From Macrostomum lignano (taxonomy: Eukaryota): DNA of 64,000 bases. Below, in pieces: positions 19,643 through 61,196 of this stretch. The stretch's first letter is position 1; every line of letters starts with the position of its first letter. The DNA lies in contig NIVC01000869.1 of the NCBI GenBank assembly GCA_002269645.1, positions 310,001 through 374,000 on the forward strand, written 5' to 3'. Below the pieces are notes generated by a model. That model was not told where the DNA came from. It was given only the letters and a program-made list of their open reading frames with translations, and made no database searches. Both the position numbers and the translations under genes were made by a program.

Positions 19643-19934
19643 AACTCAAATAATACTTCATGTTGATATTTACCTTTATTTATTTATTGTATACATTTTC
19701 CTATCCGCAGATTGAAAAGAGCCTTTGGCCTGCGAACCGGCCGAGCGCTCGCCCCGTCCAAGTCTGACAGGCTGCTCTATTTTGGCGCAGAACACCTGGG
19801 GTAAATCTAAAATTATCTACAGACGTCGTGTCCTTTGATTGTAATGAATTCGACAAAGTGCTCTAGAACGACATATCGATTAATAAAAACATCGAGAGAA
19901 GCACAATAAATGCATAGAATATAAATGCACGCAA

Positions 19935-29800: not shown

Positions 29801-32800
29801 TGATATTTGGGGGATGCTTGCTATCTGGGGATGCTTGCTATTTTGGGGATGCTTGCTGTCTGGGGATGCTTGCTATTTGGGGGATGCTTGCTACCTGGGG
29901 GGATGCTTGCTTTCTGAGGATGCTTGCTGTCTGGGGTTGGTGCTTGCTTTCTGGGGATGCTTGATATTTGCGGAATGCTTGTTACCTATGAGGATGTTTG
30001 CTGACTGGCGGAATGCCTGCTGTCTGGGGGGATCCTTGCTATCTTGGGGGATGCTTGTGACGTGCTTTAAGGATCTGGGGTTGCTCGGATCTGGGCCTGA
30101 AGATCTTAGTATCCCACCGCTATCACCAGTGAAGCGTCGTGGTATCTGGCTGCTAGGGTGAGGCGGACTGCTATTGGCCGAGGCAACCTTAGCAAGCACG
30201 CTTGTGGGGGTTGAGACTGGGGAGAAATCTAAGATCAAGGGTATAGTGCTGCCACCAGCGTGGGAACCGTAGGATCCGCAATGAAGGGGTCTGTTTGGGC
30301 TCCACGCAAATAAGTAACGCTAAAACAACTAGTCTCAGATATTTCAATGTCCAAGTGACAGGACTCAATGGTAGCAAAATGGCCTGAGCGGCGCAGTCCT
30401 GGCACTGAAAAATGTCCGCGCTTGAGCGTGTCTGAGTTTAGCTCTCAGAGGACCCCTAACTCCTACTAACCTAATAGCTAAGTCTCGCGCAGATGGGCGG
30501 CGAGGAATAGGTCTATGCGCCTGAAGCAGCAATAGACTCTAGGCCTATAACTAACAGCTAGTTCTTAGAATCGCGCACGAGTGCTGCGACTGCACACTCA
30601 CTCTCACTCTTATTCGCGCCTGTGTCGCGAATAGACTAGCAGAATGGCTTCAGCCAACTGATTTCCTGCCAATAGGGTAGGCTGGGAAACCAGAGCTGTA
30701 GCACTAGCAATGCTCTACCAAGACCTGCTCAGGAGCGTGCTTTCTGCTTGAGCGCTGCAATGCTCTACCGAGACCTGCTCAGGAGCTTGCAGCTGCTTAG
30801 CGATGCTTATAGCTCTACCAAGACCTGCTCAGGAGCTTTGCTTCGCTGTTAACCGGCGCTAGAGCGCTAGACTTGGAGAAGGCTCTCGACAAGTCTGAAT
30901 AGCGGTCAAAACGGTTCTGAGGAAAAATTCAGACAGACGGGCCTGCATTCGTTAATATAGAACGCGGAGGGTGGAGCGTTTGGGCATTCCGTGGCTTGAC
31001 CATGGAACTGCAGCCGAAAAGTGCGGATAATGATGCACAACAGATATTGATTAAACATGGGGGAAAGAGTAGCTTGTACGAAACGCCGACAGTCGCCTCA
31101 AGCCACCAGTGACAATAGCATGCCAAATTTGGGCTTGTGCGCACAAGGCTGCACGTGAGGGAGGGTTCAGCTCGGGACACGGGGTCCGCGAAACCCTCAG
31201 TCTAAAAATAGAATGACTCATGGGGAGAGGCTCGGACGCAGGAGGAACGAGAGAGCAGAAGGGGGAAGGGTCCAGCGAGCGCACGGGGGAGGAGTGCGGC
31301 TAACTAGACTTGCGTACTCTGAGCGATTGTACGCGGCAGGCCAGGCAACAACAGAACAGGCAAGCGCCAAATTTGGCGGCTTCCACTAACTAACCCAAGG
31401 CTAGGCAAAACTTCCTAATTTCCTATGTTAAAGATTGCGCCATATTGTGCAACTTCTGAGCGCCAAGGAAGGCTGCTTGGAGTGCATGGAGGCAGCAGAA
31501 AATTCCTATTCCAGATACTAGCGGCGGACAGCAGTGCCTAAGATGTGACTGCGGCCCTATGCTTGCAGCAGAAGGCTGCGGCCACATCACTTGCTGTCTG
31601 GGGATGCATGCTGTTTGGGGAAGTGCCTGCTGTCTGGGGATGCTTGCTATCTTGTGGGATGCTTGCTACCTGGGAGGATGCTTGCTGTCTGGGGATGCTT
31701 GATATTTTGGGAATGCTTGCTGTCTGGGGATGCTTGCTGTCTGGGGATGCTTGATATTTGGGGGATGCTTGTTACCTGGGAGGATGCTTGCTATTTGGGG
31801 GATGCTTGCTTTCTGAGGATGCTTGCTACCTGGGAGGATGCTTGCTGTCTGGGGATGCTTGATATTTGGGGGATGCTTGCTTTCTGAGGATGCTTGCTGT
31901 CTGGGGTTGTTGCTTGCTTTCTGAGGGGTTACTTGCTGTCTGGGGATGCTTGCTGTCTGGGGGGTTACTTGCTGTCTGGGGATGCTTGCTGTCTGAGGAT
32001 GCTTGATATTTGCGGAATGCTTGTTACCTGGGAGGATGTTTGCTGACTGGCGGAATGCCTGCTGTCTGGGGGGATCCTTGCTATCTTGGGGGATGCTTGC
32101 TGTCTGGGGATGCATGCTGTTTGGGGAAATGCCTGCTGTCTGGGGATGCTTGCTATTTGGGGGATGCTTGCTGTCTGGGGATGCTTGCTGTCTGGGAGGA
32201 TGCTTGCTATCTTGTGGGATGCTTGCTATTTGGGGAATGCTTGCTACCTGGGAGGATGCTTGCTATCTGGCGATGCTTGCTGTCTGGGAATGCTTGCTTT
32301 TTGGGGGGATGCTTGCTGTCAGGGGAGGCTTGATATTTGTGGGATGCTTGATATTTTGGGGATGCTTGCTACCTGGGAGGATGCTTGCTGTCTGGGAGGA
32401 TGCTTGCTATCTTGGGGGATGCTTGCTATTTGGGGGATGCTTGCTATTTGGGGGATGCTTGCTACCTTGAAGGATGCTTGCTATTTGGGGATGCTTGCTA
32501 TTTGGGGGATGCTTGCTATTTGGGGGATGCTTGCTACCTTGAAGGATGCTTGCTATTTGGGGATGCTTGCTATTTGGGGGATGCTTGCTACCTTGAAGGA
32601 TGCTTGCTATTTGGGGATGCTTGCTATTTGGGGGATGCTTGCTACCTGGGATGATGCTTGCTGTCTGGGAGGATGCTTGCTATCTTGGGGGGATGCTTGC
32701 TACTTGGGAGGATGCTTGCTGTCTAGGGATGCTTGCTGTCTGGGGATGCTTGCTATTTGGAGGATGCTTGCTGTCTGGGGATACTTGCTATCTGGGGATA

Positions 32801-34386: not shown

Positions 34387-36198
34387 CTACTTCAGGACAG
34401 TCAATACAATTTAATACAGCTGGCATATGCGTCATGTGTATTAGTCACTGTGGCGTATTTATTTCGAAACCAAAACTGGACGGCTTCAAAGATGCAATCC
34501 CTTGGGGGAAAAACTTTTGCTAGATTGATAAGCTATACCAAATCATTCTAGCGCTCCGATACCAATGAGAACAATCCGGCCGGCCCTACACTATGCGGGA
34601 GGCATATAAACAGCACCCCGGCACCAATTTCATGAATCATGATGGGTAATTTGCAGATGCAGCTGTGCGTTACATGTAAGGCCGACGCACAAACTTACGT
34701 CCGACATGAGGACCTTGAAGGGGGCTTCTCAGTGGCCACCAATATGACAGGGGGAAGAGCTGTCAGGACATGGACAGAGGGCGATAATGTCCTCCTACAC
34801 TACAGCCCTGACTAACACTCCTGAACAGCAATAATTCTACTTCAGGACAGTCAATACAATGAGAACTCTAGCCAAAATTTAATGCAGCTGGCATATGCGT
34901 CATGTGTATTAGTCACTGTGGCGTATTTATTTCGAAACCAAAACTGGACGGCTTCAAAGATGCAATCCCTTGGGGGAAAAACTTTTGCTAGATTGATAAG
35001 CTATACCAAAGCATTCTAGCGCTCCGATACCAATGAGAACAATCCGGCCGGCCCTACACTATGCGGGAGGCATATAAACAGCACCCCGGCACCAATTTCA
35101 TGAATCATGATGGGTAATTTGCAGATGCAGCTGTGCGTTACATGTAAGGCCGACGCACAAACTTACGTCCGACATGAGGACCTTGAAGGGGGCTTCTCAG
35201 TGGCCACCAATATGACGGGGGGAAGAGCTGTCAGGACATGGACAGAGGGCGATAATGTCCTCCTACACTACAGCCCTGACTAACACTCCTGAACAGCAAT
35301 AATTCTACTTCAGGACAGTCAATACAATGAGAACTCTAGCCAAAATTTAATGCAGCTGGCATATGCGTCATGTGTATTAGTCACTGTGGCGTATTTATTT
35401 CGAAACCAAAACTGGACGGCTTCAAAGATGCAATCCCTTGGGGGAAAAACTTTTGCTAGATTGATAAGCTATACCAAAGCATTCTAGCGCTCCGATACCA
35501 ATGAGAACAATCCGGCCGGCCCTACACTATGCGGGAGGCATATAAACAGCACCCCGGCACCAATTTCATGAATCATGATGGGTAATTTGCAGATGCAGCT
35601 GTGCGTTACATGTAAGGCCGACGCACAAACTTACGTCCGACATGAGGACCTTGAAGGGGGCTTCTCAGTGGCCACCAATATGACAGGGGGAAGAGCTGTC
35701 AGGACATGGACAGAGGGCGATAATGTCCTCCTACACTACAGCCCTGACTAACACTCCTGAACAGCAATAATTCTACTTCAGGACAGTCAATACAATGAGA
35801 ACTCTAGCCAAAATTTAATGCAGCTGGCATATGCGTCATGTGTATTAGTCACTGTGGCGTATTTATTTCGAAACCAAAACTGGACGGCTTCAAAGATGCA
35901 ATCCCTTGGGGGAAAAACTTTTGCTAGATTGATAAGCTATACCAAAGCATTCTAGCGCTCCGATACCAATGAGAACAATCCGGCCGGCCCTACACTATGC
36001 GGGAGGCATATAAACAGCACCCCGGCACCAATTTCATGAATCATGATGGGTAATTTGCAGATGCAGCTGTGCGTTACATGTAAGGCCGACGCACAAACTT
36101 ACGTCCGACATGAGGACCTTGAAGGGGGCTTCTCAGTGGCCACCAATATGACGGGGGGAAGAGCTGTCAGGACATGGACAGAGGGCGATAATGTCCTA
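34387..36198. repeat. 468-bp tandem repeat, ~3.9 copies
   Basis: CTACTTCAGGACAGTC starts at 34387, 34837, 35305 and 35773; the first unit lacks an 18-bp block. Confidence 0.97.
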
Positions 36199-39256: not shown

Positions 39257-40315
39257 GTATTGAGACTGCACAGCTGAGGTATTGAGACTGCACAGCTGAG
39301 GTATTGTGAGTGCACAGCTGAGGTATTGAGACTGCACAGCTGAGGTATTGTGAGTGCAGAGCTGAGGTATTGAGACTGCACAGCTGAGGTATTGAGAGTG
39401 CACAGCTGAGGTATTGAGACTGCACAGCTGAGGTATTGAGTGCAGAGCTGAGGTATTGAGACTGCACAGCCGAGGTATTGAGACTGCACAGCTGAGGTAT
39501 TGAGAGTGCACAGCTGAGGTATTGAGACTGCACAGCTGAGGTATTGAGAGTGCACAGCCGAGGTATTGAGACTGCACAGCTGAGGTATTGAGACTGCACA
39601 GCTGAGGTATTGAGACTGCACAGCTGAGGTATTGAGAGTGCACAGCTGAGGTATTGAGACTGCACAGCTGAGGTATTGAGACTGCACAGCTGAGGTATTG
39701 AGACTGCACAGCTGAGGTATTGAGTGCAGAGCTGAGGTATTGAGAGTGCACAGCCGAGGTATTGAGACTGCACAGCTGAGGTATTGAGAGTGCACAGCTG
39801 AGGTATTGAGACTGCACAGCTGAGGTATTGAGTGCAGAGCTGAGGTATTGAGACTGCACAGCTGAGGTATTGAGAGTGCACAGCTGAGGTATTGAGACTG
39901 CACAGCTGAGGTATTGAGTGCAGAGCTGAGGTATTGAGACTGCACAGCCGAGGTATTGAGACTGCACAGCTGAGGTATTGAGAGTGCACAGCTGAGGTAT
40001 TGAGACTGCACAGCTGAGGTATTGAGACTGCACAGCTGAGGTATTGAGAGTGCACAGCCGAGGTATTGAGACTGCACAGCTGAGGTATTGAGACTGCACA
40101 GCTGAGGTATTGAGACTGCACAGCTGAGGTATTGAGAGTGCACAGCTGAGGTATTGAGACTGCACAGCTGAGGTATTGAGACTGCACAGCTGAGGTATTG
40201 AGACTGCACAGCTGAGGTATTGAGACTGCACAGCTGAGGTATTGAGACTGCACAGCTGAGGTATTGAGAGTGCACAGCTGAGGTATTGAGACTGCACAGC
40301 TGAGGTATTGAGAGT
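39257..40315. repeat. 22-bp minisatellite (GCTGAGGTATTGAGACTGCACA), ~48 copies
   Basis: Direct reading; 20-bp deletion variants are interspersed. Confidence 0.98.
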
Positions 40316-41850: not shown

Positions 41851-44800
41851 AAACTGAGAATCATGGCGGCAAACTGAGAATCATGGCGGCAAACTGAGAA
41901 TCATGATGGTAAACTAAGAATCATGATAGCAAACTGAGAATCATGGCGGCAAACTGAGAATCATGGCGGTAAACTGAGAATCATGATGGTAACCTGAGAA
42001 TCATGATGGCAAACTGAGAATCATGATGCCAAACTGAGAATCATGGTGCAGCAAATGAGAATCATGGCGGCAAACTGAGAATCATGATGGTAAACTAAGA
42101 ATCATGATAGCAAACTAAGAATCATGGCGGCAAACTGAGAATAATGGCGGTAAACTGAGAATCATGATGGTAAACTGAGAATCATGATGGCAAACTGAGA
42201 ATCATGATGCCAAACTGAGAATCATGGTGCAGCAAATGAGAATCATGGCGGCAAACTGAGAATCATGGCGGTAAACTGAGAATCATGGCGGCAAACTGAG
42301 AATCATGGCGGCAAACTGAGAATCATGGCGGCAAACTGAGAATCATGGCGGTAAACTGAGAATCATGGCGGCAAACTGAGAATCATGATAGCAAACTTAG
42401 AATCATGGCGGCAAACTGAGAATCATGGCGGTAAACTGAGAATCATGATGGTAAACTGAGAATCATGATAGCAAACTGAGAATCATGGCGGTAAACTGAG
42501 AATCATGAAAGAAAACTGAGAATCATGATGGTAAACTGAGAATCATGGCGGCAAACTGAGAATCAAGATAGTAAACTGAGAATCATGATGCCAAACTGAG
42601 AATCATGATGGCAAACTGAGAATTATGATGGAAAACTGAGAATCATGGTGGCAAACTGAGAATCATGGCGGTAAACTGAGAATCATGGCGGTAAACTGAG
42701 AATCATGGCGGTAAACTGAGAATCATGATAGTAAACTGAGAATCATGATGCCAAACTGAGAATCATGGCGGCAAACTGAGAATCATGATGGTAAACTGGA
42801 GAATCATGATGGTAAACTGAGAATCATGGCGGCAAACTGAAAATGGTGGCAAACTGAGAATCATGGCAGCAAACAGAGAATCATGATGGTAAACTGAGAA
42901 TCATGATGCCAAACTGAGAATCATGGCGGTAAACTGAGAATCATGGCGGCAATCCGAAAATCATAATGGTAAACTGAGAATCATGGCGGCAAACTAATAA
43001 TCATGGCGGCAAACTGAGAATCATGAAAGCAAACTGAGAATCATGGTGCAGCAAATGAGAATCATGGCGGCAAACTGAGAATCATGGCGGAAAACTGAAA
43101 ATCATAGCGGAAAACTGAGAATCATGGCGGTAAACTGAGAATCATGATGGTAAACTGAGAATCATGATGCCAAACTAAGAATCATGGCGGCAAACTGAGA
43201 ATCATGGCGGCAAACTGAGAATCATGATGGTAAACTAAGAATCATGATGGTAAACTGAGAATCATGATAGCAAACTGAGAATCATGATAGCAAACTGAGA
43301 ATCATGGCGGCAAACTGAGAATCAAGGCGGTAAACTGAGAATCATGGCGGCAAACTAAGAATCATGGCGGCAAACTGAGAATCATGGCGGAAAACTGAGA
43401 ATCATGATGGTAAACTGAGAATCATGATAGCAAATTGAGAATCATGGCGGCAAACTGAGAATCATGATAGCAAACTGAGAATCATGGCGGCAAACTGAGA
43501 ATCATGATGGTAAACTGAGAATCATGGCGCAGAAATGAGAATCATGGCGCTGAAATGAGAATAATGGCGCAGAAATGAGAATAATGGCGCAGAAATGAGA
43601 ATCATGGCGCTGAAATGAGAATAATGGCGCAGAAATGAGAATCATGGCGCAGAAATGAGAATCATGGCGCAGAAATGAGAATCATGGCGCAGAAATGAGA
43701 ATCATGGCGCAGAAATGAGAATCATGGCGCTGAAATGAGAATAATGGCGCAGAAATAAGAATCATGGTGCTGAAATGAGAATAATGGCGCAGAAATGAGA
43801 ATCATGGCGCTGAAATGAGAATAATGGCGCAGAAATGAGAATCATGGCGCAGAAATGAGAATAATGGCGCAGAAATGAGAATCATGGCGCAGAAATGAGA
43901 ATAATGGCGCAGAAATGAGAATAATGGCGCAGAAATGAGAATCACGGCGCTGAAATGAGAATAATGGCGCAGAAATGAGAATCATGGCGCAGAAATGAGA
44001 ATAATGGTGCAGAAATGAGAATCATGGCGCAGAAATGAGAATAATGGCGCAGAAATGAGAATCATGGCGCAGAAATGAGAATAATGGCGCAGAAATGAGA
44101 ATCATGGCGCTTAAATGAGAATAATGGCGCAGAAATGAGAATAATGGCGCAGAAATGAGAATCATGGCGCTGAAATGAGAATAATGGCGCAGAAATGAGA
44201 ATCATGGCGCAGAAATGAGAATAATGGTGCAGAAATGAGAGTCATGGCGCAGAAATGAGAATAATGGCGCAGAAATGAGAATCATGGCGCAGAAATGAGA
44301 ATCATGGCGCAGAAATGAGAATAATGGCGCAGAAATGAGAATCATGGCGCAGAAATGAGAATCATGGCGCAGAAATGAGAATAATGGCGCAGAAATGAGA
44401 ATCATGGCGCTGAAATGAGAATAATGGCGCAGAAATGAGAATAATGGCGCAGAAATGAGAATCATGGCGCAGAAATGAGAATCATGGCGCAGAAATGAGA
44501 ATCATGGCGCAGAAATGAGAATCATGGCGCAGAAATGAGAATCATGGCGCAGAAATGAGAATCATGGCGCAGAAATGAGAATCATGGCGCAGAAATGAGA
44601 ATCATGGCGCTGAAATGAGAATCATGGCGCAGAAATGAGAATCATGGCGCAGAAATGAGAATAATGGCGCAGATATGAGAATAATGGCGCTGAAATGAGA
44701 ATAATGGCGCAGATATGAGAATAATGGCGCAGAAATGAGAATAATGGCGCAGAAATGAGAATCATGGCGCAGAAATGAGAATCATGGCGCAGAAATGAGA

Positions 44801-45843
44801 ATAATGGCGCAGAAATGAGAATCATGGCGCTGAAATGAGAATAATGGCGCAGAAATGAGAATCATGGCGCTGAAATGAGAATCATGGCGCAGAAATGAGA
44901 ATCATGGCGCAGAAATGAGAATCATGGCGCAGAAATGAGAATAATGGCGCAGAAATGAGAATCATGGCGCAGAAATGAGAATCATGGCGCAGAAATGAGA
45001 ATCATGGCGCAGAAATGAGAATCATGGCGCAGAAATGAGAATCATGGCGCAGAAATGAGAATCATGGCGCAGAAATGAGAATCATGGCGCAGAAATGAGA
45101 ATCATGGCGCAGAAATGAGAATCATGGCGCAGAAATGAGAATCATGGCGCAGAAATGAGAATCATGGCGCAGAAATGAGAATCATGGCGCAGAAATGAGA
45201 ATCATGGCGCAGAAATGAGAATCATGGCGCAGAAATGAGAATCATGGCGCTGAAATGAGAATCATGACGCAGAAATGAGAATAATGGCGCAGAAATGAGA
45301 ATCATGGCGCAGAAATGAGAATAATGGCGCAGAAATGAGAATCATGGCGCAGAAATGAGAATAATGGCGCAGAAATGAGAATATAGGCGCAGAAATGAGA
45401 ATAATGGCGCAGAAATGAGAATAATGGCGCAGAAATGAGAATCATGGCGCAGAAATGAGAATCATGGCGCAGAAATGAGAATAATGGCGCAGAAATGACA
45501 ATCATGGCGCAGAAATGAGAATCATGGCGCAGAAATGAGAATCATGGCGCAGAAATGAGAATCATGGCGCAGAAATGAGAATAATGGCGCAGAAATGAGA
45601 ATCATGGCGCAGAAATGAGAATAATGGCGCAGAAATGAGAATCATGGCGCAGAAATGAGAATCATGGCGCAGAAATGAGAATAATGCCGCAGAAATGAGA
45701 ATCATGGCGCAGAAATGAGAATAATGGCGCTGAAATGAGAATCATGGCGCAGAAATGAGAATAATGGCGCGGAAATGAGAATAATGGCGCAGAAATGAGA
45801 ATAATGGCGCAGAAATGAGAATCATGGCGCAGAAATGAGAAAT
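41851..45843. repeat. 20-bp satellite with two sub-domains
   Basis: AAACTGAGAATCATGRYGGY (41851-43520), then AGAAATGAGAATMATGGCGC (43521-45843). Confidence 0.98.
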
Positions 45844-46910: not shown

Positions 46911-47110
46911 GTTTTTTGAGCACATTTCTGAGTATATATTTACGTAATTTAACACTGGTATCTCTTTATATCGAACTTTTTGACATTACCCGACTGCTTT
47001 GCCATTCGAAATGCCAAATATCATCATAATAAAATAAAATGACGCAATGTTAGCACGTGATCCATGAAAGGCATAGATATATAGATAGATAGATTTATCT
47101 ATGTATATAT
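46911..47110 (+). repeat. ~170-bp dispersed repeat leading into (GATA)n; second copy at 60066-60230
   Basis: TTTTTGAGCACATTTCTGAG...GATCCATGAAAGGCATAGATA is shared with few mismatches. Confidence 0.92.
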
Positions 47111-47112
47111 TA

Positions 47113-47323
47113 ACCTCTGTTGCTGGCGCCCCCTCTGTAGCTGGCGCCCCCTCTGTTGCTGGCGCCCCCTCTGTAGCTGGCGCCCCCTCTGTAGCTGGCG
47201 CCCCCTCTGTAGCTGGCGCCCCCTCTGTAGTTGGCGCCCCCTCTGTAGCTGGCGCCCCCTCTGTAGCTGGCGCCCCCTCTGTAGCTGGCGCCCCCTCTGT
47301 AGTTGGCGCCCCCCTCTGTAGCT
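47113..47323 (-). repeat. 18-bp minisatellite (GAGGGGGCGCCAGCTACA on -), ~12 copies
   Basis: Same unit as 57743-58090 in the opposite orientation. Confidence 0.95.
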
Positions 47324-48084
47324 GACAACCTCGCGCTGCTGTCATTGTCGGCTGAAGGCGCTCAGAGGCTGCTGGATGGCCTGACGGCAGCAGCATCGCG
47401 AGTCGGCCTCATGCTGAAAGCGCGGAAGACGGCAGTCTTCACGGTGCCCTCCGACCTGCCTGCCGAGATCAACTACCGAGACGCTGCCGGGGAGGCAATC
47501 ATGCTTACCCGTTGCCTCGGTGGCCTCGTGCCGGACGTTGCCGACGACCTGGTGAGACGACGAGGCCTGGGCTGCATTTCATTGCGCTCCGTGTGCTCCA
47601 TTCTGAGGCCCTGGATGACGGGCTCAAGGCTCGGCTGTTTCAGGCAGTCGTTGAGACTGTTCTTGTACAACGCCGAGACCTGGACCCTGACGGACGGTTT
47701 AGAGAGGCAGCTGGACGCTGCACATGCGGCCATGCTGTGTGCGGCGTTCTGAGTGCGCAGCGGTCCAAGCAGCGAGACCAGTGCCGCGCTCTACACGAGG
47801 GCACGCCTGATGCGGCCTTCTGACCTGCTGCGTGGGCGACGACTTCGACTGGCTGGCCACGTCATCCGGTCGGAGGCTCGCTGCCCTGAGGTGCTGCTGC
47901 TCAAACTGCAGGGACAGCGCACGCGAGGCCAAGGGCGAACTGCGAGATACCCTGACAGGCGTTTGACCGATGCTGGCACCCGGACCAAGCTGGGGGTGTG
48001 AATTTCTGAGGGCGTTGGCCCAGAGACGCGCTATCTGACTTCTCCCCCGTTTCTGGACACTTCGTGTCTGGCGGGTGAAGTACT

Positions 48085-49095: not shown

Positions 49096-49751
49096 AGCTA
49101 GTGCAAATATTTCCTCCGCTAATGCAATAATCGCTTTCTCAGGTTGTACAATAATGCATGCCTCAGCTAGCGCAATAATCTCTTTTTATTCCAGCGCAAT
49201 AATCCGCTTCTCAGCTACTGCAACAATCCTTTACTCATCAAGTGCAAAATCGATGTCTCAGCTAGTGCATTAGTCCATTGCTGGGGCTGTTGCCCCCAGG
49301 ACCCCGGGTCCTGCACGCAATGGCGTGGTGAACTATCTGTGCAGTATGAGACTGGTATGGCCCGTATCCCAGCCAGCGATGCTCACACCTGCCTCCCCTG
49401 GCGGGCTGATAGCTCAAGAGTCTCCTGATTTTCACCTTGCAAGGCGCACTTCGAAGGGTACTCGTCCCGTGGGTGTTAAGGCAGGCTTTATTGGGCCTTG
49501 CCGAGCTGATTCGTTGGCACAGGGTCCTGGTGTGACCATATAAACGCACCCTCTAATGTCCCAGTGTAACTCCGTGTTGATGGACGCTTGGCCAGGGAGT
49601 AGTCTGGTCGCTAACGGTTCCCCTTGCGCTTTTGGGTCTTCCCGCAGGGTGGTATTTTGCTTTTTGGGGGCCTGCCGCTATGTTTGGGGTTGCGGCCTTG
49701 CGGCTCTTTGCCTGTGTTCTGCAGGAAGTCCCACCTTTTTACTCCCAGCCA

Positions 49752-51269
49752 ATGGCTTCTAACCGAAATAACCAACCGGCTGTGGATGACACAGTGCCTC
49801 CGGCCTCGGCTGGGGCCGTGGACTCCGCGGCCATACCACCTGCTACCATCGGGGACGCCTCGGCGAGACCCGTGGAGCCAACTCTGAGCGGTGCCTCCGA
49901 GAAGACACCTGCTACTCCAGCTGCCAAGCTGAGCAACACCTCTGGAGCTGCCCGCCGTCGACTTAACAAGGCGAGGCGGGCCAAGGAGGGCGGAAGCCTA
50001 ACCGGCGCCAGAGGCCAACGGCCCGCGGCAGCGGAAGCCTCCCAATCTGGGGCGGTGGCGGAAGAGGGCCTCGAGCCCACTGAAGTCCCTGCCCAGGATA
50101 GGGAGGCCGATGCAGCCGGGAGGGTGGACAGCCCACCTGAAGAATGCTCCACCGACCCCCAGGCCTCCTACGCTGATGCGGCAAAGAGGCAACCGGCGAT
50201 CGTCATTCTGGGGAAGGACGCGCGCCTGTCTCCCGACCAGCTGAAGCAGGTGAGAGGTGCCGTTGATGGCCTCCTGTGGAAGCAAACTCTGAAGGGCACG
50301 CCTCTGAACATTCATTCAAATGCGACGAGAGACTCGTGCCTTCTCATTTGGCCCAGTGATGCTGACTCGGGTCGGCGGCTTCTTGAGCTGCTGCCCGAGC
50401 AGAGCTGGGACCTCAATTTAGCCTTCTGCAGAGAGGACGAACGCTTCCGGACCAAGAGGCATCGAATCTGGGTTCCGGCCAGGAGCGTCGTTACCTCTGC
50501 TGACGAGCTCCGGAAAGGACTGCTTGCAGTCAACCAAGAGCTTCCCGCCGCGGGCCTAGTGGTGCATGACACCCTTAGGCGCACCGACGGCACTGGCTTC
50601 ACAGCCATCCTGGGGCTGTCGGACGCCTGGATGAGGCGCTATCCGCACGGCAGCTTCATCAACGTCGGTCTTTGGAAGCTGCGCATCCGCTCCTACGAGG
50701 CCGACCCTCCCCGTGGCAGTGAGCAGGGCGGGCGGAATGCCGAAGCAGCTGGGGCCGAGGCGCGAGCTTCTGCTCCGGCTGCCAAAGCAAACCGCCCCGC
50801 CCGGCAGCACGGCTGTGCGGATAAAGCCGAGCGCGCTGCTGAGGGCGGAGGCGACCTACGCCCGGCGCGCAGCACCAAGCGGCGCGGCCTGTACCAGCGC
50901 GCAGCTGAAGCGGTCCGCACCGCCAAAATCACCCAGCTGAGGCGAGAGGTCGCCGGGACGCCTAGGCGCACCAGTTCGTCCAGGGAGGGTGGGGACGTCC
51001 CAGCTGGGCCCAACCCCTCGGGGCAGGGCCGACTGGAGACGGACCCGCCTGCCCAGGCGGCTGGCTGCTCCAGGGCATTGGGCCAGTCTGAAGCGGAGGA
51101 CCCCGTGGCCGGTGGGCGAAGGGCGGCGAACGCTGCCTATTGCCTTACGACCAATCGGGGGCCTTTTGCTGAAGAGGAGCCCATGGACACCGGCGACCCC
51201 GACCCGAAGCTGGTGAGCGCCGAGGAGGAGGAGGAACTCCTGGCGGCTGCAACATCCGATCTGCACTGA
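49752..51269 (+). CDS. LINE ORF1 (intact, ~505 aa)
   Basis: Open frame from ATG 49752 with low-complexity termini and a core homologous to ORF1 of the 701-4850 element; stop overlaps the ORF2 start (TGATG). Confidence 0.88.
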   Translation: MASNRNNQPAVDDTVPPASAGAVDSAAIPPATIGDASARPVEPTLSGASEKTPATPAAKLSNTSGAARRRLNKARRAKEGGSLTGARGQRPAAAEASQSGAVAEEGLEPTEVPAQDREADAAGRVDSPPEECSTDPQASYADAAKRQPAIVILGKDARLSPDQLKQVRGAVDGLLWKQTLKGTPLNIHSNATRDSCLLIWPSDADSGRRLLELLPEQSWDLNLAFCREDERFRTKRHRIWVPARSVVTSADELRKGLLAVNQELPAAGLVVHDTLRRTDGTGFTAILGLSDAWMRRYPHGSFINVGLWKLRIRSYEADPPRGSEQGGRNAEAAGAEARASAPAAKANRPARQHGCADKAERAAEGGGDLRPARSTKRRGLYQRAAEAVRTAKITQLRREVAGTPRRTSSSREGGDVPAGPNPSGQGRLETDPPAQAAGCSRALGQSEAEDPVAGGRRAANAAYCLTTNRGPFAEEEPMDTGDPDPKLVSAEEEEELLAAATSDLH

Positions 51270-54200
51270 TGCCAGCGGCTACCTGGTGTCTGCAGATCAA
51301 CACCCAGCACTGCGTGACGGCGTCAGTCAACCTGATGCGCACGACAGAGCAACAGCTTCCGGGCCTGGTCTTCGTACAGGAGCCCTGGATGACTAAAGGT
51401 AAGCCAAATAATGTGCCATCTGGCTACCACTGTTTTTGCATGGCGGACTCTCAGCCTCGCCCAAGATCTCTGGTCTTTGCTGCAAAAGCATTTAAGGCAT
51501 GGATGAGATCTGATCTCTCGACTGGGGACATCTGTGTTGTTCAAATCAATAACCTCATTCCAAATAAACCTGTGCTGGTAGCATCTGCCTATTTCCCAGG
51601 CGATGCCCCAGTAGTCTGCGACGCACTAGTCAACCTCATTGACTACGCCGCGTCCCGTCGGTTCGAGCTGCTCATTGCAGGGGGGCGTAAATGCACACCA
51701 CCTGCATTGGGGCAGCAAGAACACCAATAACAGAGGCGAGGAGCTGCTGGTCTACGTCAGCAGCACAAACCTCAATTTCTGTAACGTGGGATTGCACCAA
51801 CGTTCAATAATGGGCGGTGGGCCGAAGTCATCGACACCACCATCGCCTCACCCGGACTGCTTTCCGCAGTCACGGGCTGGCGAGTGTGGGACGAGGACTC
51901 ACTCTCGGATCACCGCTTCATCCGCTTATGCATTGGGCCGACCAAGCAAAAGCCTAAGGTCACTTGGAGTCGGAACGTCAGGAACACCGATTGGGCCGCC
52001 TTTGGCTCAAAGCTGAGCCGCGGCCTTCGGGATCTTGACCCCCCCAGTGACCTCTCTGACTGCCAGGTGGTGGATGATCTCGCCTCCTCCCTAGGAGGGG
52101 CGATCACCACTGCCTTTGAGGCAGCCTGCCCTCTAAAGGCCTATAAAGGCAAGAAATCTGCTCCCTGGTGGAACCCAGAGCTCGGGGCCCTTCGGTGCCG
52201 AGCCAGGACCCTCCAAAGGCGAGCGCTCAAAACCAAAGACCCATCTGATATAGAGGCCTATACCCCTGCGATCCACGAGTTTAAGGGCCAAGTCAGAAGG
52301 GCCAAGACGGCCAAGTGGCGCCAATATTGCGAAGGGCTTGAGGGCTCTCGCCCCGTAGCCCGCGTGGTTAAGGCACTCACTAATGACCGTTTTTCTAAAC
52401 TCTCTGTTGTGAAGAGACCTGATGGCTCGGTCACAGAGAGCTCGGAAGAGACTCTAGAGCTCATGCTCAACAGTTTTTCCCTAAATCTCCGACTCAGCAG
52501 GGCCCGCCCGACCACACAGTGGGAGGGCAAGGCCTAGCAAAGTCTATGATCACCAAAGACCGCATTATTAGAGCGGCAAGGTCCTTTAACCCGTTCAAGG
52601 CGCCTGGGCCCGACGGCATCTACCCAGCGTTCTTGCACGAGGCGGTGAAAAACCACCGCTTCCTGGACCTGCTCTGTCGTCTCCTTCGAGCTTGTGTGGA
52701 GCTGGGCTATGTATCAGTTGCGTGGAGAGACGCCCGGGTGGTTTTTATCCCCAAGCCTGGAAAGAGCGACTATTAATCGGTGAAGGCCTTCAGGCCTATC
52801 AGCCTCACTTCTTTCTGCCTCAAGCTCCTCGAGAAACTGGTGCTTTGGCGCCTACTTTCGGTCTAGCTGAAGCGCTTCCCACTCTCGCAGGATCACCACG
52901 CCTTTTGCGCGGGCAGGTCTACCGAGAGTGCCCTCCATGTCATTGTTGACTTCCTGGAGAGGGCCGTTCTTGGCAGCGGACTCCGCACATTTAAACTAAA
53001 GCCAAAAAAGCCCTGGTTGTCCTGGCTCAGATCAGGCGCGCCGTGGGCACCACCTGGGGGCTCACCCCCCAGGAAGCTGTGGTGGATTTACACTGCCATC
53101 ATCCGCCCCTCGATCAGTTACGCCAGCCTCGTGTGGGCTAGCGGCCTGAGCGTCAAGAGCAACCTCGACGCTCTCTACAAAATCCAGGGCAGAGCCTGCC
53201 GCATGACTATGGGCGCTCCACCCTCTACTCCTTTTGAAGGCATGAATGCCTTCCTCTGTGCCCCTCCTTTGGATATTTATATCAAAGGAGAGGCGGCGAA
53301 GAGCACCCGGCGTCTTCTGGATGCTGGGGTGGCCTTCAAGAAAGTGCGGGCCTTTAAGAAGCGGTCGCTTATCCCGCACTCTGACCTCTGCCTCAAGGCT
53401 CTCGAGGAGTGTGGCGGGCTCAACATCCTCACGGACTCGATCCCAGCCACCCTTCTCCTGAGCCAAAGGTATAAGGTCACCATTCAGCCTCGACACGAGG
53501 CGAGTGACAGCTGGAGCGACTCTGAAGTCCACTGTTACACTGACGGCTCTATGAGGCATGGTCTTTCAGGCTTCGGAGCTTGCGTCTTCTTCAAGGGAGA
53601 AGTGGTGTGGAGCTACTCCCAGCACACTGGGCTCAACTCCAGTGTTTTTCAGAGCGAGGTGCTTGCCATCAGCTCCTGCGCGGCAGAGCTGCGCCGAAGG
53701 CAGCTTAGCGGCCGGAAATTTATTTTTCACTCTGACAGCCGAGCAGCCCTTCGGGCCCTCTGCCGCAGCACCGCCAGCTCCAGGTCCGTCCTGGACTGCA
53801 ACACCCAGCTCAACGGGCTTGCGCTAGGCAACCAGGTGGAGCTCAGATGGATCCCGGGCCACGCCGGCTTCCTCGGCAACGAGCGCGCTGACCTGCTGGC
53901 CAAGGCTGGCTCCGCCGGCGCGCTTTTGGGGCCGGGCCCGGGTGCCCCCATCCCCGCCTCGGTGATCAATTCCCGCGTTAAGCGCTGGGCTGACTCCGAG
54001 CATCTCCGCAGGTGGCACGACACCCGGAATTGTAGGCAATCCCGTGCTGCCGTCCCCTGTCCCTCTCCTCTCCTGCGTAGAGCCCTCCTCAGGCTCAACC
54101 GCAGTGACCTCAGAGCAGTTAGCATGGCCCTCTCCGGGCATGGCTGCTTCTCTCGCCACCGCTTCCTTCAGGGCCAAGTACCCGAGGAGCGGTGCCCCTT

Positions 54201-54426
54201 CTGCCGCTCAGGCAGTGAAAACGCCGAGCATTTTATCTGCCACTGCCCGGTTTTCACCAGGGCCAGGCTTACTCACCTCGGGCCAAACCCGGTTCTCTCC
54301 GACGTTTGCAGGCCCGAGAGCATCCCGCTGCTCGCCCGGTACCTCAGGGACACCGGACGAGCTGATTTCTTCCCCACCGTCGGTGAGGAGGACCGCGCTG
54401 CAGGCGAGACCGACGGGTCCCCCTGA
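51269..54426 (+). pseudogene. LINE ORF2: APE + partial RT + RNase H + CCHC finger; RT core deleted, several frameshifts
   Basis: APE motifs, KAPGPDG, FRPISL; junction at about 52979 joins AVLGSG directly to the post-RT region (no LDxxxAFD/PQG/YADD); RNase H YTDGS..SEV..SDS..WIPGH..GNERAD; CPFC..AEHFICHC. Confidence 0.9.
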
Positions 54427-54541
54427 GCGACACCACTTCAACGGAAGTCGTTGGTCGCCAGGGGCTAGCGGAATGGGCGGTCTCCTCCGCCTCCTCGCTG
54501 CATCCGCCGGACGCCCCCTGCAGCTAAGTCAAGTAAGTCAA

Positions 54542-55810
54542 AGATAGCAAGCATCCTCCCAGACAGCAAGCATCCTCAGAAAGCAAGCATCCCCGAAATA
54601 GCAAGCATCCTCAGACAGCAGGCATTTCCCCAGACAGCAAGCATTCCCCTAGGTAGCAAGCATCCTGCAAATAGCAAGCATCCCCAGACAGCAAGCATCC
54701 CCCCAGGTAGCAAGCATTCCCCAAATAGCAAGTATCCTCCCAGACAGCAAGCATCCCCAGATAGCAGGCATTCCCCCAGACAGCAAGCATCCTCCCAGGT
54801 AGCAAGCATCCCCCCGATAGCAAGCATCCCCCAAGATAGCAAGCATCCTCCCAGGTAGCAAGCATCCCCAAATTATCAAGCATCCCCCAAATAGCAAGCA
54901 TTCCCAGACAGCAATAATCCCCAGATAGCAAGCATCCCCAGATAGCAAGCATCCCCAGACAGCAAGCATCCCCCCAGGTAGCAAGCATTCCCCAAATAGC
55001 AAGTATCCTCCCAGACAGCAAGCATCCCCAGATAGCAGGCATTCCCCCAGACAGCAAGCATCCTCCCAGGTAGCAAGCATCCCCAGATAGCAAGCATCCT
55101 CCCAGACAGCAAGCATCCTCAGAAAGCAAGCATCCCCCCAGGTAGCAAGCATCCCCCAAATATCAAGCATCCCCAGACAGCAAGCATCCCCAAATAGCAA
55201 GCATCCTCAGACAGCAAGCATTCCCCCAGGTAGCAAGCATCCCCCAAATATCAAGCATCCCCCAAATATCAAGCTTCCCCAGACAGCAAGCATCCCCCTA
55301 GATAGCAAGCATCCCCCAAATAGCAAGCATCCCCAGACAGCAAGCATCCTCAGAAAGCAAGCATCCCCCCAGGTAGCAAGCATCCCCCAAATAGCAAGCA
55401 TCCCCCAAATATCAAGCATCCCCCAAATATCAAGCATCCCCAGACAGCAAGCATCCCCCTAGATAGCAAGCATCCCCCAAATAGCAAGCATCCCCAGACA
55501 GCAAGCATCCTCAGAAAGCAAGCATCCCCCCAGGTAGCAAGCAACCCCCAAATAGCAAGCATCCCCTAAATAGCAAGCATCCCCAGACAGCAAGCATCCC
55601 CAGACAGCAAGCATCCTCCCAGGTAGCAAGCAACCCCCAAATAGCAAGCATCCCCTAAATAGCAAGCATCCCCAGACAGCAAGCATCCCCAGACAGCATG
55701 CATCCTCCCAGGTAGCAAGCAACCCCCAGATAGCAAGCATCCCCAGACAGCAAGCATCCCCAGACAGCAAGCATCCTCCCAGGTAGCAAGCATCCCCAGA
55801 TAGCAAGCAT
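54542..55810 (-). repeat. GATGCTTGCT satellite block inside the composite insertion
   Basis: Reverse complement of the 24-33 kb satellite. Confidence 0.97.
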
Positions 55811-55817
55811 GACCACT

Positions 55818-57485
55818 GGCCAATGACCACAGCAGATGTACACCATTGTCAGACAGGAGTCTCCTGTGGCCATTGTGACCCGAGCAATGGGTGGCCCTTT
55901 AATGCCGATATTCACCTTCGGCAAGGAGGATTTAGTTTCCAGGAAAATCTAACTGTTGATTCGGACGATGCTCAACTAGTTCAAAAAGTACTGCTTGCCT
56001 CAATTTTTGAGATCGTATGTAGATAGATCGTACGTATGAATTGAATTTCGCGCTCTAAATCCGCTAGTTTCAGTTTAAATGCAAGCTATTTGTCCACCAG
56101 CGCATTGTAGTACTCGCAGTTTCGCTAAATGTTAGGCACTCGGCCCTGCGTCAAAGTTGACCTCATTCATGCTCTGCCCTGCTAAAAGATCATTTGTTAA
56201 TCCTGTTCTCTTCAGCTCGAAATTTTACTGTATCTTCTTTATTACAATTACAAGATTATCATTGTGGCATTTGTTGGATTTCCTCAAGTTTGCGTCTGGG
56301 TGCAGAACAAGGCTGCGATCCAGCTTCCCAAGCCTGACAAGCAGCAGCTGCCAAAGCAGTGAATTGGCTTGCGCTGCCAGCGCTGCAGTCCCAACAGAGC
56401 ACACGGGGCACAACGCTGGTCGGCTCTAGACTGAATCGATCGATATTTGCAACCCTCCCCTCTCCCCGCCTCCCGCTCTGCGCGTCATTGCATTGTGAAG
56501 AGAAAAAGTCTCCGCGTTCAGGGCATTGAAATGGAAGCAGAGTTGAGGCTGAGGCGGCTGATTGGGAGGATGGGTGAGTCGGTCTCCTCCCTCCCTTCAG
56601 TCCGCGAGTCCCCCCGTTTCTCAAGAACAAGAGGCTGGTGAGGAGAATGAAGGAACAGAGGAGGCAGGGCAGGGACGGAGCTGTGGCTGCCTGACACTCG
56701 GGCTCTCTGTTTGTCTTCGCTATCGATAATAATGGAAAGGGGGCCGGTTTGAGGGGATGGAGAGGTGAGATGGGAAACGTAGCCGTGACAATGGGGAGGC
56801 TTACAGCAGTGCACTGAACTAGCGAGCAGCTGGAGATTAATGAGTGCGGACGGTACGGCTTGCTTCAGTCCCAGTTTTACGTTTTTGCTTTAGCAGCCCG
56901 CGGGCGCTGCCTATTGTTGCAGAAGCGGAAAGCCCGGAGTGACAAGGAGGAGGAAGAGATGCAGACGGCTCATGCGGATGAGATGGGATGAGATGGGGTG
57001 GGATGAGATGGGGTGGGATGAGACGGGTGGGATGACATGGGATGGAATGAGATGGGGTAGGATGAGACGGGTGGGATGGGATGGGGTGGGATGAGACGGG
57101 GTGGGATGAGACGGGTGGGATGAGGTGAGGTGAAATGAGACGGGGTGGAATGAGACGGGTTGGGATGAGACGGGGTGGGATGAGATGAGGTGAGATGAGA
57201 CGGAGTGGAATGAGACGGGTGGGATGAGATGAGGTGAGATGAGACGGGGTGGAATGAGACGGGGTGGGATGAGATGAGGTGAGATGAGACGGAGTGGAAT
57301 GAGACGGGTGGGATGAGATGAGGTGAGATGAGACGGGGTGGGATGAGACGGGGTGAAATGAGACGGGTGGGATGAGATGAGGTGAGATGAGACGGGGTGG
57401 GATGAGACGGGGTGGAATGAGACGGGGTGGGATGAGACGGGTGGGATGAGATGAGGTGAGATGAGACGGGGTGGGATGAGACGGG
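55818..57485 (-). repeat. Inverted copy of 17230-18402 plus ~510 bp of the 15-bp satellite (contains FkbM fragment ~55835-55985 on +)
   Basis: Direct reverse-complement match. Confidence 0.95.
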
Positions 57486-57559
57486 TGCATCCGCCGGACG
57501 CCCCTGCAGCTAAGTCAAGTAAGTCAAGCATTAGTCCATTTCTAAGCTAGTGCAGTAAT

Positions 57560-57742
57560 CCTTGATTTATCCAGTGCAGTCATGCTTGGTTTATCAAGTG
57601 CAGTAATGCTTGGTTTATCAAGTGCAATAATACTTGGTTTATCAAGTGCAGTAATCTTTGTTTTATCAAGTGCAGTAATGCTTGGCTTATCAAGTGCAAT
57701 AATATTTGGTTTATCAAGTGCAGTAATCCTTGGCTTATCAAG
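57560..57742. repeat. 24-bp minisatellite (GCTTGGTTTATCAAGTGCAGTAAT); degenerate continuation at 49095-49279
   Basis: About 7 copies; related AGTGCA(A/G)TAAT units lie left of the composite insertion. Confidence 0.88.
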
Positions 57743-58090
57743 CGCCAGCTATAGAGGGGGCGCCAGCTACAGAGGGGGCGCCAGTTACAGAGGGGGCGCC
57801 AACTACAGAGGGGGCGCCAGCTACAGAGGGGGCGCCAGCTACAGAGGGGGCGCCAGCTACAGAGGGGGCGCCAGCTACAGAAGGGCGCCAGCTACAGAGG
57901 GGGCGCCAGCTACAGAGGGGGCACCAGCTACAGAGGGGGCGCCAGCTACAGAGGGGGCGCCAGCTACAGAAGGGCGCCAGCTACAGAGGGGGCGCCAGCT
58001 ACAGAGGGGGCAACAGCTACAGGGGGGGCGCCAGCTACAGAGGGGGCGCCAGCTACAGAGGGGGCGCCAGCTACAGAGGGGGCGCCAGCT
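57743..58090 (+). repeat. 18-bp minisatellite GAGGGGGCGCCAGCTACA, ~19 copies
   Basis: Direct reading. Confidence 0.97.
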
Positions 58091-58605
58091 ACCTACAGAG
58101 GGTCGTCAGAGGTTCATGTGAAGTGAGTGCTTTGAAGGTGACTGCAGCTCAAATTGTCACAAGTTGCCTAATGTAGCACAAACCTTGTGCAGCAGAGTTG
58201 AGTACTCTTACTTTGTTTAGAACTCCCCTTTCCCTCTATCATCTCCCTCTAAAAAGCCATATTTCGTTACCTGCATAAAGCTTGGCTACACCTCTGTCTG
58301 TCTCCCTGCTCACTCTTCTCAACCTCACCTTCTACTAGGGTTTGATGGGCAGTACAGAAACAGAAATAGGTAGCTATGACAACCACGCTGGCCAATGAAC
58401 TGCCACCCTGACTCTAGCTGCTTCCATGTTTCTCTCCGAGAGCGCACATAGGCATTAAAATTGAGGAGCTGACTTTACTGCCCCCCCGTATTATTGTCTC
58501 ATGGAAACAATAAATGACCGCGAGCGATTCAACTCCACGGATGAAACTGTAGAAATAGATCGGTTCACGTTAGGTTGGACTATACTGTAGAGCGAGACCC
58601 GAAGC

Positions 58606-59781
58606 ATGCAAAATTGTACCAAATACTCGTATTTGAAGCCACTACTGGCGCTGATGCTTGGCAGCACCATGGCGTGGCTGCTGGTAATCACACTGCAATC
58701 GCAAGAAAGAATTCGCAGTATCAACGCCATCGAGCTTGAGCGGGGCCATGCTAAGCAAGCTGTTTTAAATCCGTCAGAGGCAGCTGCTGTCACAACTAAA
58801 GCAACAACGGCCGCAGACTTAGCGAGATCGCTAAAAACTCTGCCGCCATCGAAAGACCGCGTCATGTGTAAAAGCTTCGATGAATTGCGCAACTTGGACT
58901 TCCAGCAGACGGCGCTTCAGGACGCTCTGTGCAGCGGGGTCAAAGCATACGAGAAAAAAAACAATGGATTCCCCTTGTGCCGCCTGCCGAACCCGTTCGA
59001 TGAAAGAATCCTCGGCATCGTGCGGTCCGGCAGCGCCACCGCCGATCTGCTGGACATGAGCAATACGAAAATGAAAATGTTCGTCTACGCCGAGAAGGAC
59101 GCCATCTCCGAGGCGATCAAAAAGCATCATATTTGGGAGTCTAATTTGGTTCACGCAACTATGAGACTGGCGCAGAAGGTGCCGGATGTGACTTTCCTAG
59201 ACGCCGGCTGTAACATTGGCGTGTACAGCTTGCTGGCGGCGAGACTCGGCCTGCCCGTTGTGTCGCTGGACGCGAACATCCGCAATCTGCTGCGACTCCG
59301 CCTGAGCCTCACTGCGTCGGCACTGGACACTGTGCTCGTGTGGAACTTCATCAGCTCCGGAGACCAGCTGAGTTACCTGAACTTTCCGAGAGACTGCAAC
59401 GTCGGCGGAGCAACAAAGTTCGGTAGAGCCATCGCCGACACGATCCCCGTGATGCCAGTACGCAGCGAGCGTCTTTGCGACCACATCAAGACAAAGAATG
59501 TCGTCATCAAGCTGGACATCGAAGGCGGAGAGGCTGACTTTCTAAGGACATCCGGCTGTCTGTTTAGCCAGTTCAACGTCGCCGCAGTTCAGATGGAGTT
59601 CCTCCAAATGCACATGCAGGGCAATGACCGGGCCACCATTGTCGAGTTTTTCACTACCAGAAACTACACGTTGTGGGAGTCTGTGTCCTTCAAACCGCTG
59701 AACGTCACGACGATGAAAGCAACTGACGTGATTTGGATTCACGAAAACTTCAAGTACCTGGTGCATCCGCGCAAGCAGTGA
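58606..59781 (+). CDS. Type-II membrane FkbM-family SAM-dependent methyltransferase, 391 aa, intronless
   Basis: N-terminal TM LLALMLGSTMAWLLVITL, Ala/Thr-rich stem, SAM motif I FLDAGCNIGVYSL, VVSLDAN, VVIKLDIEGGE, VQMEF. The ORF is unbroken. Confidence 0.88.
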   Translation: MQNCTKYSYLKPLLALMLGSTMAWLLVITLQSQERIRSINAIELERGHAKQAVLNPSEAAAVTTKATTAADLARSLKTLPPSKDRVMCKSFDELRNLDFQQTALQDALCSGVKAYEKKNNGFPLCRLPNPFDERILGIVRSGSATADLLDMSNTKMKMFVYAEKDAISEAIKKHHIWESNLVHATMRLAQKVPDVTFLDAGCNIGVYSLLAARLGLPVVSLDANIRNLLRLRLSLTASALDTVLVWNFISSGDQLSYLNFPRDCNVGGATKFGRAIADTIPVMPVRSERLCDHIKTKNVVIKLDIEGGEADFLRTSGCLFSQFNVAAVQMEFLQMHMQGNDRATIVEFFTTRNYTLWESVSFKPLNVTTMKATDVIWIHENFKYLVHPRKQ

Positions 59782-60226
59782 GCGGCAAAAGATTGCCGAC
59801 CGTCGTTAAGCTGGGTCTGCCGCCGCTAAACCAGCGCTGCAAACTAACTAATCCATGGAATCTGTCCGATTTTGAAAATGCGACTAGTTTGCCACTTATT
59901 TCATTAATTGATTACAGGTGCGTTACTGCGCGGCGATAGTTATTTCCTCCGTTTTTAGGTAATTGTATAATTCTAAACATTACTCTCTACCTTGATTCCC
60001 CATGCATACATTGTTATACTGAATATTATCTTAGTAGCCTCAATAGCCTTGCGATCTGTTAAATTGTTTTTGAGCACATTTCTGAGTATATATTTACGTA
60101 ATTTAACACTAGTATCTCTTTATATCAAACTTTTTGACATTACCTGACTGCTTTGCCATTCGAAATGCCAAATATAATCATAATAAAATAAAATGACGCA
60201 ATGTTAGCGCGTGATCCATGAAAGGC

Positions 60227-61196
<970 letters not shown>

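Follow-up and report, generated by a model that had tools for sequence, protein, structure and literature searches.

The closest described counterparts of the locus reported here are bi- and tripartite chimeras, such as U6-L1 and B2-U6-L1 of mouse and WEIRD, Mg-SINE and MGL of Magnaporthe, which lie within a single target site duplication (TSD) and have been ascribed to template switching by the reverse transcriptase (RT) of a long interspersed nuclear element (LINE; PMC2104539). LINE-1 (L1) chimeras with diverse RNAs have likewise been catalogued (PMC13174262), and in vitro the R2 protein jumps to new RNA 3' ends during target-primed reverse transcription (TPRT), yielding cDNAs longer than one template (PMC11194090). 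Here, we analyse a 64-kb window of the Macrostomum lignano genome (NCBI GenBank assembly GCA_002269645.1, contig NIVC01000869.1, positions 310,001 to 374,000 of the forward strand; coordinates below are positions in this window, and all within-window searches cover that stretch), in which one 13-bp TSD encloses a near full-length LINE, 2.9 kb of 'cargo' and then a repeat of the final 42 nt of that element. That LINE insertions can be chimeric, or can transduce other DNA, is known; the layout, in which the cargo stands between a LINE and a repeat of that LINE's 3' end, is unusual. On balance, we favour a single TPRT event as the source of all 8.25 kb, by way of a chimeric cDNA that arose as the RT switched templates, perhaps to a read-through transcript of a LINE.

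The resemblance to the published chimeras (PMC2104539) is close: their parts follow one another head-to-tail, all in one orientation, the LINE 3' end lies 3'-most and a single TSD (13-16 bp in theirs) surrounds the whole, and one or two template switches during TPRT have been invoked for them, as we do here. The differences lie in what has been joined. At the 5' end of the M. lignano locus stands a near full-length LINE, of the family to which the 3' stub also belongs; the cargo sits between two identical LINE termini, the stub being only 42 nt long; that cargo consists of satellite and a local genomic paralog, rather than an abundant small RNA or a short interspersed nuclear element (SINE); and the LINE itself has a specific, non-polyA 3' end together with an RNase H domain.

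The 13-mer GCATTAGTCCATT is found at just two sites in the window, 49267-49279 and 57528-57540 (both on the plus strand), even when one mismatch is tolerated, and the 8,248 bp between these copies represents the inserted DNA in full. To the left lies the target array, a degenerate 24-bp minisatellite (49114-49266; period 24 in Tandem Repeats Finder, TRF), whose units parse as the same family as those of the right flank, where the array continues in phase (57541-57742; TRF period 24, 86% matches). After deletion of 49280-57540 in silico, and cutting of the result at the recurring motif GCA(A/G/T)TA, the minisatellite runs on in phase and uninterrupted: across the joint, the 13-mer and the 11 nt with which the right flank begins together make up GCATTAGTCCATTTCTAAGCTAGT, a unit of exactly 24 nt, and the reconstructed empty site reads ...CTCAGCTAGTGCATTAGTCCATTTCTAAGCTAGTGCAG.... 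As removal of the insert rebuilds the 24-bp array in this way, the repeated 13-mer is a true TSD, rather than a reflection of minisatellite periodicity or a pair of neighbouring units; and since the TSD is unique to the two ends, with the empty site restoring the array in phase, there was a single insertion site. An original prediction for this stretch, made by reading the sequence, had placed one 13-bp TSD around 8.25 kb and assigned both flanks to one minisatellite family at a single insertion site; both statements are borne out.

Within the TSD, the LINE (a non-LTR, that is non-long-terminal-repeat, retrotransposon) occupies 49280-54541 on the plus strand (5,262 bp), as judged from its open reading frames (ORFs) and protein matches, and comprises a 5' untranslated region (UTR), ORF1 (49632-51269) and the remnants of ORF2, the start codon of which (ATG at 51269) overlaps ORF1. 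The N-terminal part of ORF2 encodes an apurinic-type endonuclease (51269-51990, plus strand), recognised by the Pfam profiles Exo_endo_phos_2 (63.1 bits against a cutoff of 27.4) and Exo_endo_phos once two frameshifts are corrected. Downstream, an N-terminal RT segment with two in-frame stops (52519-52975, plus strand) corresponds to positions 1-62 only of the 205 in the RVT_1 profile (20 bits, below cutoff) and ends at an internal deletion. In tblastn comparisons with homologs the break falls at ~52967: residues 1-101 of one homolog (P0002), which include the YADD box, and residues 377-440 of another (P0001) have no counterpart in the LINE, and the RT core is therewith absent. Beyond the deletion follow an RNase H domain (53524-53913, plus strand; residues 170-299 of the ORF at 53017-54426; PF00075, 44.4 bits against a cutoff of 25.8) and, after it, a C-terminal Cys/His motif. 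The combination of an endonuclease, RNase H, a defined 3' terminus with simple-repeat tail and a 13-bp TSD, with no LTRs, is that of an apurinic endonuclease (APE)-type LINE.

As the RT domain is incomplete, the window copy is a deletion derivative of its family and not an autonomous member; the near-complete length of the element and its missing RT core had both been read correctly beforehand. Its best protein match is an M. lignano entry (UniRef A0A1I8IXZ7; 99% amino-acid identity over 323 aa) and, on the strength of this near-identity to another M. lignano copy, it appears to be young, albeit non-autonomous. Given the loss of the RT core together with that 99% identity, the LINE was probably a passive template whose mobilisation took place in trans. 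The element also carries three in-frame stops (TAA, TAG, TAA) and several homopolymer frameshifts, the latter of which may in part be consensus errors. We found nothing on this LINE family in the M. lignano transposon literature. A divergent relative of the same LINE group (~66% nucleotide identity) is present at 1194-2887 on the minus strand, where it runs off the start of the window.

The 3' UTR of the LINE (54427-54541, plus strand) contains a GC-rich hairpin at 54467-54499, on which the alignment and single-sequence folds agree, followed by 42 nt that end in an (AAGTC/AAGT)n tail. Two metagenome contigs from JGI samples 3300038379 (L001) and 3300037309 (L002) encode relatives with 59-61% amino-acid identity (P0002 and P0004, respectively), and alignment with these reveals a 3' UTR block common to all three elements, GGTCGCCAGGGG(C/T)TAGCGGAATGGGCGG...CCGCC...CGCTG(C/T)ATCCGC, then CCCTGCAGCTAAGTCA, after which comes a tail of AAGTC/AAGT type, differing in length among copies, and then unrelated DNA; the last ~25 nt, tail included, are conserved among these relatives. 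Since L001 and L002 share the 3' UTR and tail and diverge immediately afterwards, the first LINE copy ends at the true 3' terminus of its family, ...AAGTAAGTCAA, at 54541; the (AAGT/AAGTC) tail recognised in the original prediction is thus a feature of the relatives too. It is also worth recording that the 3' UTRs of the L001 and L002 elements are nearly identical to that of the M. lignano element although their ORF2 is only ~60% identical, a pattern that would imply flatworm-like DNA in the two samples and strong selection on the 3' UTR. A scan of viral contigs for the conserved 3' UTR motif gave no match.

At the far end of the insertion, 57486-57527 (plus strand) repeats 54499/54500-54541, the last 42 nt of the LINE (BLAST, 54499-54540 against 57486-57526, 97.6%), the sole difference being an indel in a C-run (C4/C5). 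The first two bases of this second copy (tg) could equally continue the preceding 15-bp satellite, leaving 40 nt that are unambiguous, so that the repeat described by the earlier reading stands with that small proviso. The 24-mer CCCTGCAGCTAAGTCAAGTAAGTC has two sites in the window, at the two LINE 3' ends; no other LINE tail, and no second copy of any junction, is present in the 64 kb. Both LINE copies finish in the identical tail ...AAGTAAGTCAA and differ at the very next base, which is A (satellite) after the first and G (TSD) after the second. No copy of the TSD stands between the first tail and the cargo, and no A-run precedes the right TSD. A metagenome scan with the 18-mer GCATCCGCCGGACGCCCC returned 120 chance bacterial matches, none with a LINE tail, the pattern being too short for that database.

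The cargo and both LINE pieces are directly fused in one orientation, with all parts inside the one TSD and the LINE 3' end 3'-most. Three junctions result. The first (J1), between the LINE tail and a 17/18-bp satellite, shows 0-1 nt of microhomology; the second (J2) joins the two pieces of which the cargo is a mosaic, through a 9-nt filler; and the third (J3), between a 15-bp satellite and the second LINE end, has a 2-nt (tg) microhomology, with the satellite alignment running to 57487. With respect to the LINE sequence, J3 sits 0-2 nt 3' of the conserved hairpin (54467-54499), that is, at its 3' base.

Piece 1 of the cargo (54542-55810, plus strand) is 1.27 kb of the 17/18-bp satellite (AGATAGCAAGCATCCCC)n as delimited by TRF, and the remaining window arrays of that satellite reach 85% identity to it at best. 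The J2 filler that follows (tgaccactg, 55810-55818, plus strand, read directly from the sequence) partly re-copies a TGACCAC located 16 nt downstream, and the junction sequence GCATGACCACTGG is unique in the window. Piece 2 (55819-57487, plus strand; delimited by BLAST, collinear alignment and tblastx) is a 1.67-kb copy of a local paralog and consists of a 105-bp fragment related to the FkbM family (55823-55930), 1.05 kb that is non-coding and, at 56984-57485 (plus strand; TRF), 0.5 kb of 15-bp satellite. Both satellites therefore match the original prediction (1.27 kb of an 18-bp and 0.5 kb of a 15-bp repeat). The cargo ORFs gave nothing significant against Pfam, and the cargo region contains no Rfam or tRNA (ARAGORN) match, which we sought by analogy with the U6-L1 chimeras.

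What did not survive is the description of the intervening 1.16 kb as 'unique' DNA: 55819-56975, the non-satellite part of piece 2, has a counterpart of 99.4% identity at 18403-17246 (minus strand). The paralog (16733-18403, minus strand; BLAST and collinear alignment), a candidate donor or sister copy of piece 2, thus lies inverted within the same window, 32-40 kb from the cargo. Collinearity extends across the 15-bp satellite as far as 57487; its partner there is the proximal ~530 bp of a 2.6-kb array (14643-17245), made up of that 15-bp repeat, into which the paralog runs on; across this satellite alignment the two copies have idiosyncratic variant units in common and differ mainly by unit-length indels. 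LINE pieces are found at neither end of the paralog. The nearest 17/18-bp array in the same orientation (23899-30057) is separated from it by 5.5 kb of transposon debris, in which a GIY-YIG foldback of Penelope-like type and a piece of an RT are found. Paralog and cargo therefore have the order satellite / segment / satellite in common, but the cargo is not a simple recent copy of DNA now present in the window. We also considered whether the paralog and the 17/18-bp satellite were once contiguous, the 5.5 kb representing later insertions; this was not supported, as the array end at 23899 lacks the cargo junction and GCATGACCACTGG is confined to the cargo. As for the debris itself, the foldback (18526-19686) consists of two inverted arms of 462 bp (99% identity) that enclose a GIY-YIG-domain ORF, and is flanked on both sides by GTATACAATAAA, which may be its target duplication; the fragment at 20560-22660 (plus strand) derives from a different retroelement and gives an N-terminal RVT_1 match.

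The gene fragment in piece 2 was originally attributed to a methyltransferase gene, and here the family relation holds: the 36 aa encoded by 55823-55930, in sense orientation, are 78% identical to an ORF at 11371-11478 (tblastx). This ORF forms the non-catalytic N-terminal portion of a gene; a further ORF of that gene, downstream at 11762-12289, resembles FkbM methyltransferases, as does an intact paralog at 58606-59781. The fragment is nevertheless short (~105 bp) and restricted to that non-catalytic N-terminal part. A TGA stands immediately upstream of the cargo peptide, and the 41-aa peptide gives no direct alignment to the intact ORF at 58606-59781, which is the only one to pass the Pfam FkbM (Methyltransf_21) cutoff (23.5 against 22.7 bits; the others are sub-threshold). 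This intact ORF (plus strand, intronless, 391 aa, FkbM-type) lies 1 kb downstream of the insertion, whereas its paralog at 11251-12289 (plus strand) looks split or frameshifted. The homology between cargo and paralog, and that between paralog and methyltransferase gene, end within 7 nt of each other (55819 / 18403 / 11374). A splice acceptor at 55819 / 18403, suggested by an adjacent AG within 7 nt of the homology end at 11374, was rejected: when the 11-kb gene is compared with the ORF at 58606-59781, coding sequence continues upstream (PLCEL / PLCRL), and no exon boundary is implied.

How, then, might this structure have arisen? In the single-event account that we favour, a nick in the 24-bp minisatellite would have allowed the LINE RT to prime at a LINE RNA's 3' tail and to copy the last 40-42 nt of that RNA. 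At the 3' base of the conserved GC-rich 3' UTR hairpin the enzyme would have stalled and switched, through the 2-nt (tg) microhomology, onto the 15-bp-satellite sequence of another template; proceeding leftwards, it would have copied the 1.67-kb local-paralog segment and the 17/18-bp satellite, and finally the RNA of the RT-core-deleted LINE, from exact 3' terminus to 5' end, with second-strand synthesis then yielding the 13-bp TSD. We infer that the cargo template was RNA and that the pause occurred at the hairpin, and the number of switches may be as low as one. In this most economical version, the second template would be the downstream part of a read-through transcript, produced from a deleted LINE copy that lay upstream of a satellite / paralog / satellite locus, such that cargo, LINE and tail formed one continuous template; the RT would start on the LINE tail of the same or another RNA and switch onto the downstream flap, which would also explain the identical tails of the two LINE ends. 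This hybrid of read-through LINE RNA and a single switch was absent from the original prediction and is more economical than the routes proposed there. The same mechanism might instead have run through two or three end-to-end jumps, each to a separate RNA, or through a jump from a tail-bearing non-autonomous RNA onto a LINE RNA; jumps of the RT between templates also figured among the three models of the original prediction, which did not choose among them. Of the weight that we place on template switching, about one half falls to read-through with one switch, and what remains to several jumps from one RNA to another.

An RT that jumps to, or reads through, an RNA 3' end predicts J1 at the exact LINE terminus, and this is where J1 falls; a J1 at that terminus and a J3 at the hairpin base are both natural for an RT, and would both be coincidences for a random DNA break. 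Jumping of a non-LTR RT between templates in vitro (PMC11194090) behaves similarly, in that cDNA synthesis resumes at the exact 3' end of the new RNA, matching J1; those experiments, however, are biochemistry on defined RNAs, whereas here we have a genomic footprint from a different LINE lineage, in which the first switch (J3) is internal rather than from a template 5' end. Several observations weigh on the other side. The 99.4% identical paralog lies in cis, inverted, with the same satellite order, a proximity expected of replication-based DNA template switching and not obviously of RNA capture; the 17/18-bp satellite reaches at most 85% identity to window arrays, and J2 has no counterpart there; and the hairpin is predicted from conservation among three sequences in which the pairs are mostly invariant, so that covariation lends it weak support.

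These points bear most directly on a DNA-level origin, also raised in the original prediction as a later insertion that duplicated 42 bp. Here the 3' end of an already inserted LINE would have been hit by microhomology-mediated break-induced replication or fork stalling and template switching (MMBIR/FoSTeS), or by polymerase-theta end joining, copying nearby DNA and duplicating the 42 bp. Short microhomology and partly templated filler are typical of such repair, and the locus offers 0-2 nt of the former and a 9-nt filler partly templated 16 nt away; the inverted paralog provides a nearby template in cis, with the same satellite order and orientation, and the two 42-nt copies with their tails are identical save for the one C-run indel. 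Yet a break would be needed exactly at the LINE/TSD boundary, leaving zero TSD bases in the first copy (roughly 1 in thousands if random), and the other breakpoint would have to coincide with the base of a conserved RNA hairpin that has no meaning for a DNA mechanism; rather than being unrelated to retroelement RNA landmarks, both breakpoints fall on them. Nor are the satellites recent copies of any array now in the window (17/18-bp: 85%). With its breakpoints at the exact LINE 3' terminus and the hairpin base, we regard a DNA-level origin as disfavoured and very unlikely. Less likely still, indeed highly improbable, are two successive retro-insertions at the same nick, the LINE arriving first and a LINE cDNA truncated to 42 nt following later, its 5' junction having taken up 2.9 kb of filler. 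L1 5' junctions can capture extra sequence, and the endonuclease could have cut again at the right half-site, which was retained; staggered cleavage for a second time would, however, have placed a TSD copy after the first tail, ahead of the cargo, where none is present, and with a first tail that is intact and identical to the second, the second event would have to be exactly blunt.

A different view, again among those originally put forward, is that the composite existed beforehand: deleted LINE, cargo and a 42-nt, 5'-truncated LINE remnant would have stood in tandem elsewhere, and a read-through RNA of all three, with its end at the tail of the remnant, would have retrotransposed as a unit. 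Remnants of this kind are common, all junctions are explained without any switch in the present event, the whole unit lies inside one TSD, and the last ~25 nt including the tail, being conserved among relatives, may suffice for priming. Against this, the 42-nt end is missing the most conserved part of the 3' UTR, the hairpin block at 54467-54499, and stringent-type LINEs generally need such 3' structures (PMC4176376); no second copy of any junction or LINE tail occurs in the 64 kb, and the nearby paralog carries no LINE pieces at either end. We therefore hold a pre-existing composite to be unlikely, and with it, to the same degree, that the window copy belongs to a family of composite non-autonomous retrotransposons carrying satellites. 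Slightly more doubtful is the further possibility that RT-deleted LINE, cargo and 42-nt terminus form an actively mobilised composite family, or that cargo and 42-nt tail are a nascent tail-sharing non-autonomous element; were either true, satellite arrays and gene pieces would be seeded at new loci, and the last ~40 nt, without the conserved hairpin, would suffice for priming by the LINE RT. Finally, an artefact of long-read assembly in a repeat-rich neopolyploid genome is implausible: the homopolymer frameshifts do suggest unpolished consensus errors and the region is dense in satellites, but a 42-nt repeat is unable to mis-join long reads, and neither a perfect TSD nor an in-phase minisatellite would be expected from a chimeric join.

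If template switching is the right account, the locus would represent a clean natural footprint of the process (or of read-through plus switching) for a LINE with a specific 3' end instead of poly(A). It would also indicate a route by which such LINEs transduce flanking DNA, which L1 does via a downstream poly(A). An insertion made by L1 3' transduction is closed by a new poly(A), gained from a polyadenylation site downstream. As there, DNA 3' of the LINE is here carried inside a single TSD, and the read-through version would likewise involve a transcript extending past the element's own end; the difference is that the M. lignano insertion closes with the specific 3' terminus of the element, present for the second time, and no new poly(A). 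Such a second terminus fits a LINE that needs its own tail for priming, whence an extra switch, or a downstream remnant, would be implied.

A second consequence, under the same account, would be a route for foreign sequence to join a LINE tail, the proposed first step in the birth of a SINE. SINE/LINE pairs with a common 3' tail are known for stringent-type LINEs (PMC4176376), and the fusion of foreign sequence to a short LINE 3' tail is what we see here, cargo plus 42 nt being a possible nascent example; unlike in those SINEs, the 42 nt are without the conserved hairpin and the arrangement is present as a single copy in the window. Thirdly, one retrotransposition event would have moved two satellite arrays and a gene fragment, which bears on the spread of dispersed short arrays in repeat-rich genomes such as that of M. 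lignano. Helentrons of the Pacific oyster also carry satellite arrays (PMC7492417) and, as here, a mobile element thereby moves short arrays to a new locus; the oyster carrier is a rolling-circle DNA transposon, whereas in M. lignano it would be a retrotransposon event, seen in a single case. As a single locus, ours is an instructive example and not a new principle.

The surroundings of the insertion are themselves repetitive. An 18-bp satellite, GCGCCAGCTACAGAGGGG, is present to either side of the locus, reversed at 47114-47324 and forward at 57742-58092, and a 160-bp unit is directly repeated around it (46913-47072 and 60067-60226, 96.9%); the neighbourhood (46913-47324 and 57742-60226) thus has an organisation that suggests a patchwork of segmental duplications. 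Further large tandem arrays are found at 34408-36197, 39257-40313, 41855-45841, 7011-7674 and 60227-61196, and comprise a 468-bp unit (x3.8, 99% identity), a 22-bp array, a 4-kb array of a 20-bp unit and two long (TAGA)n tracts.

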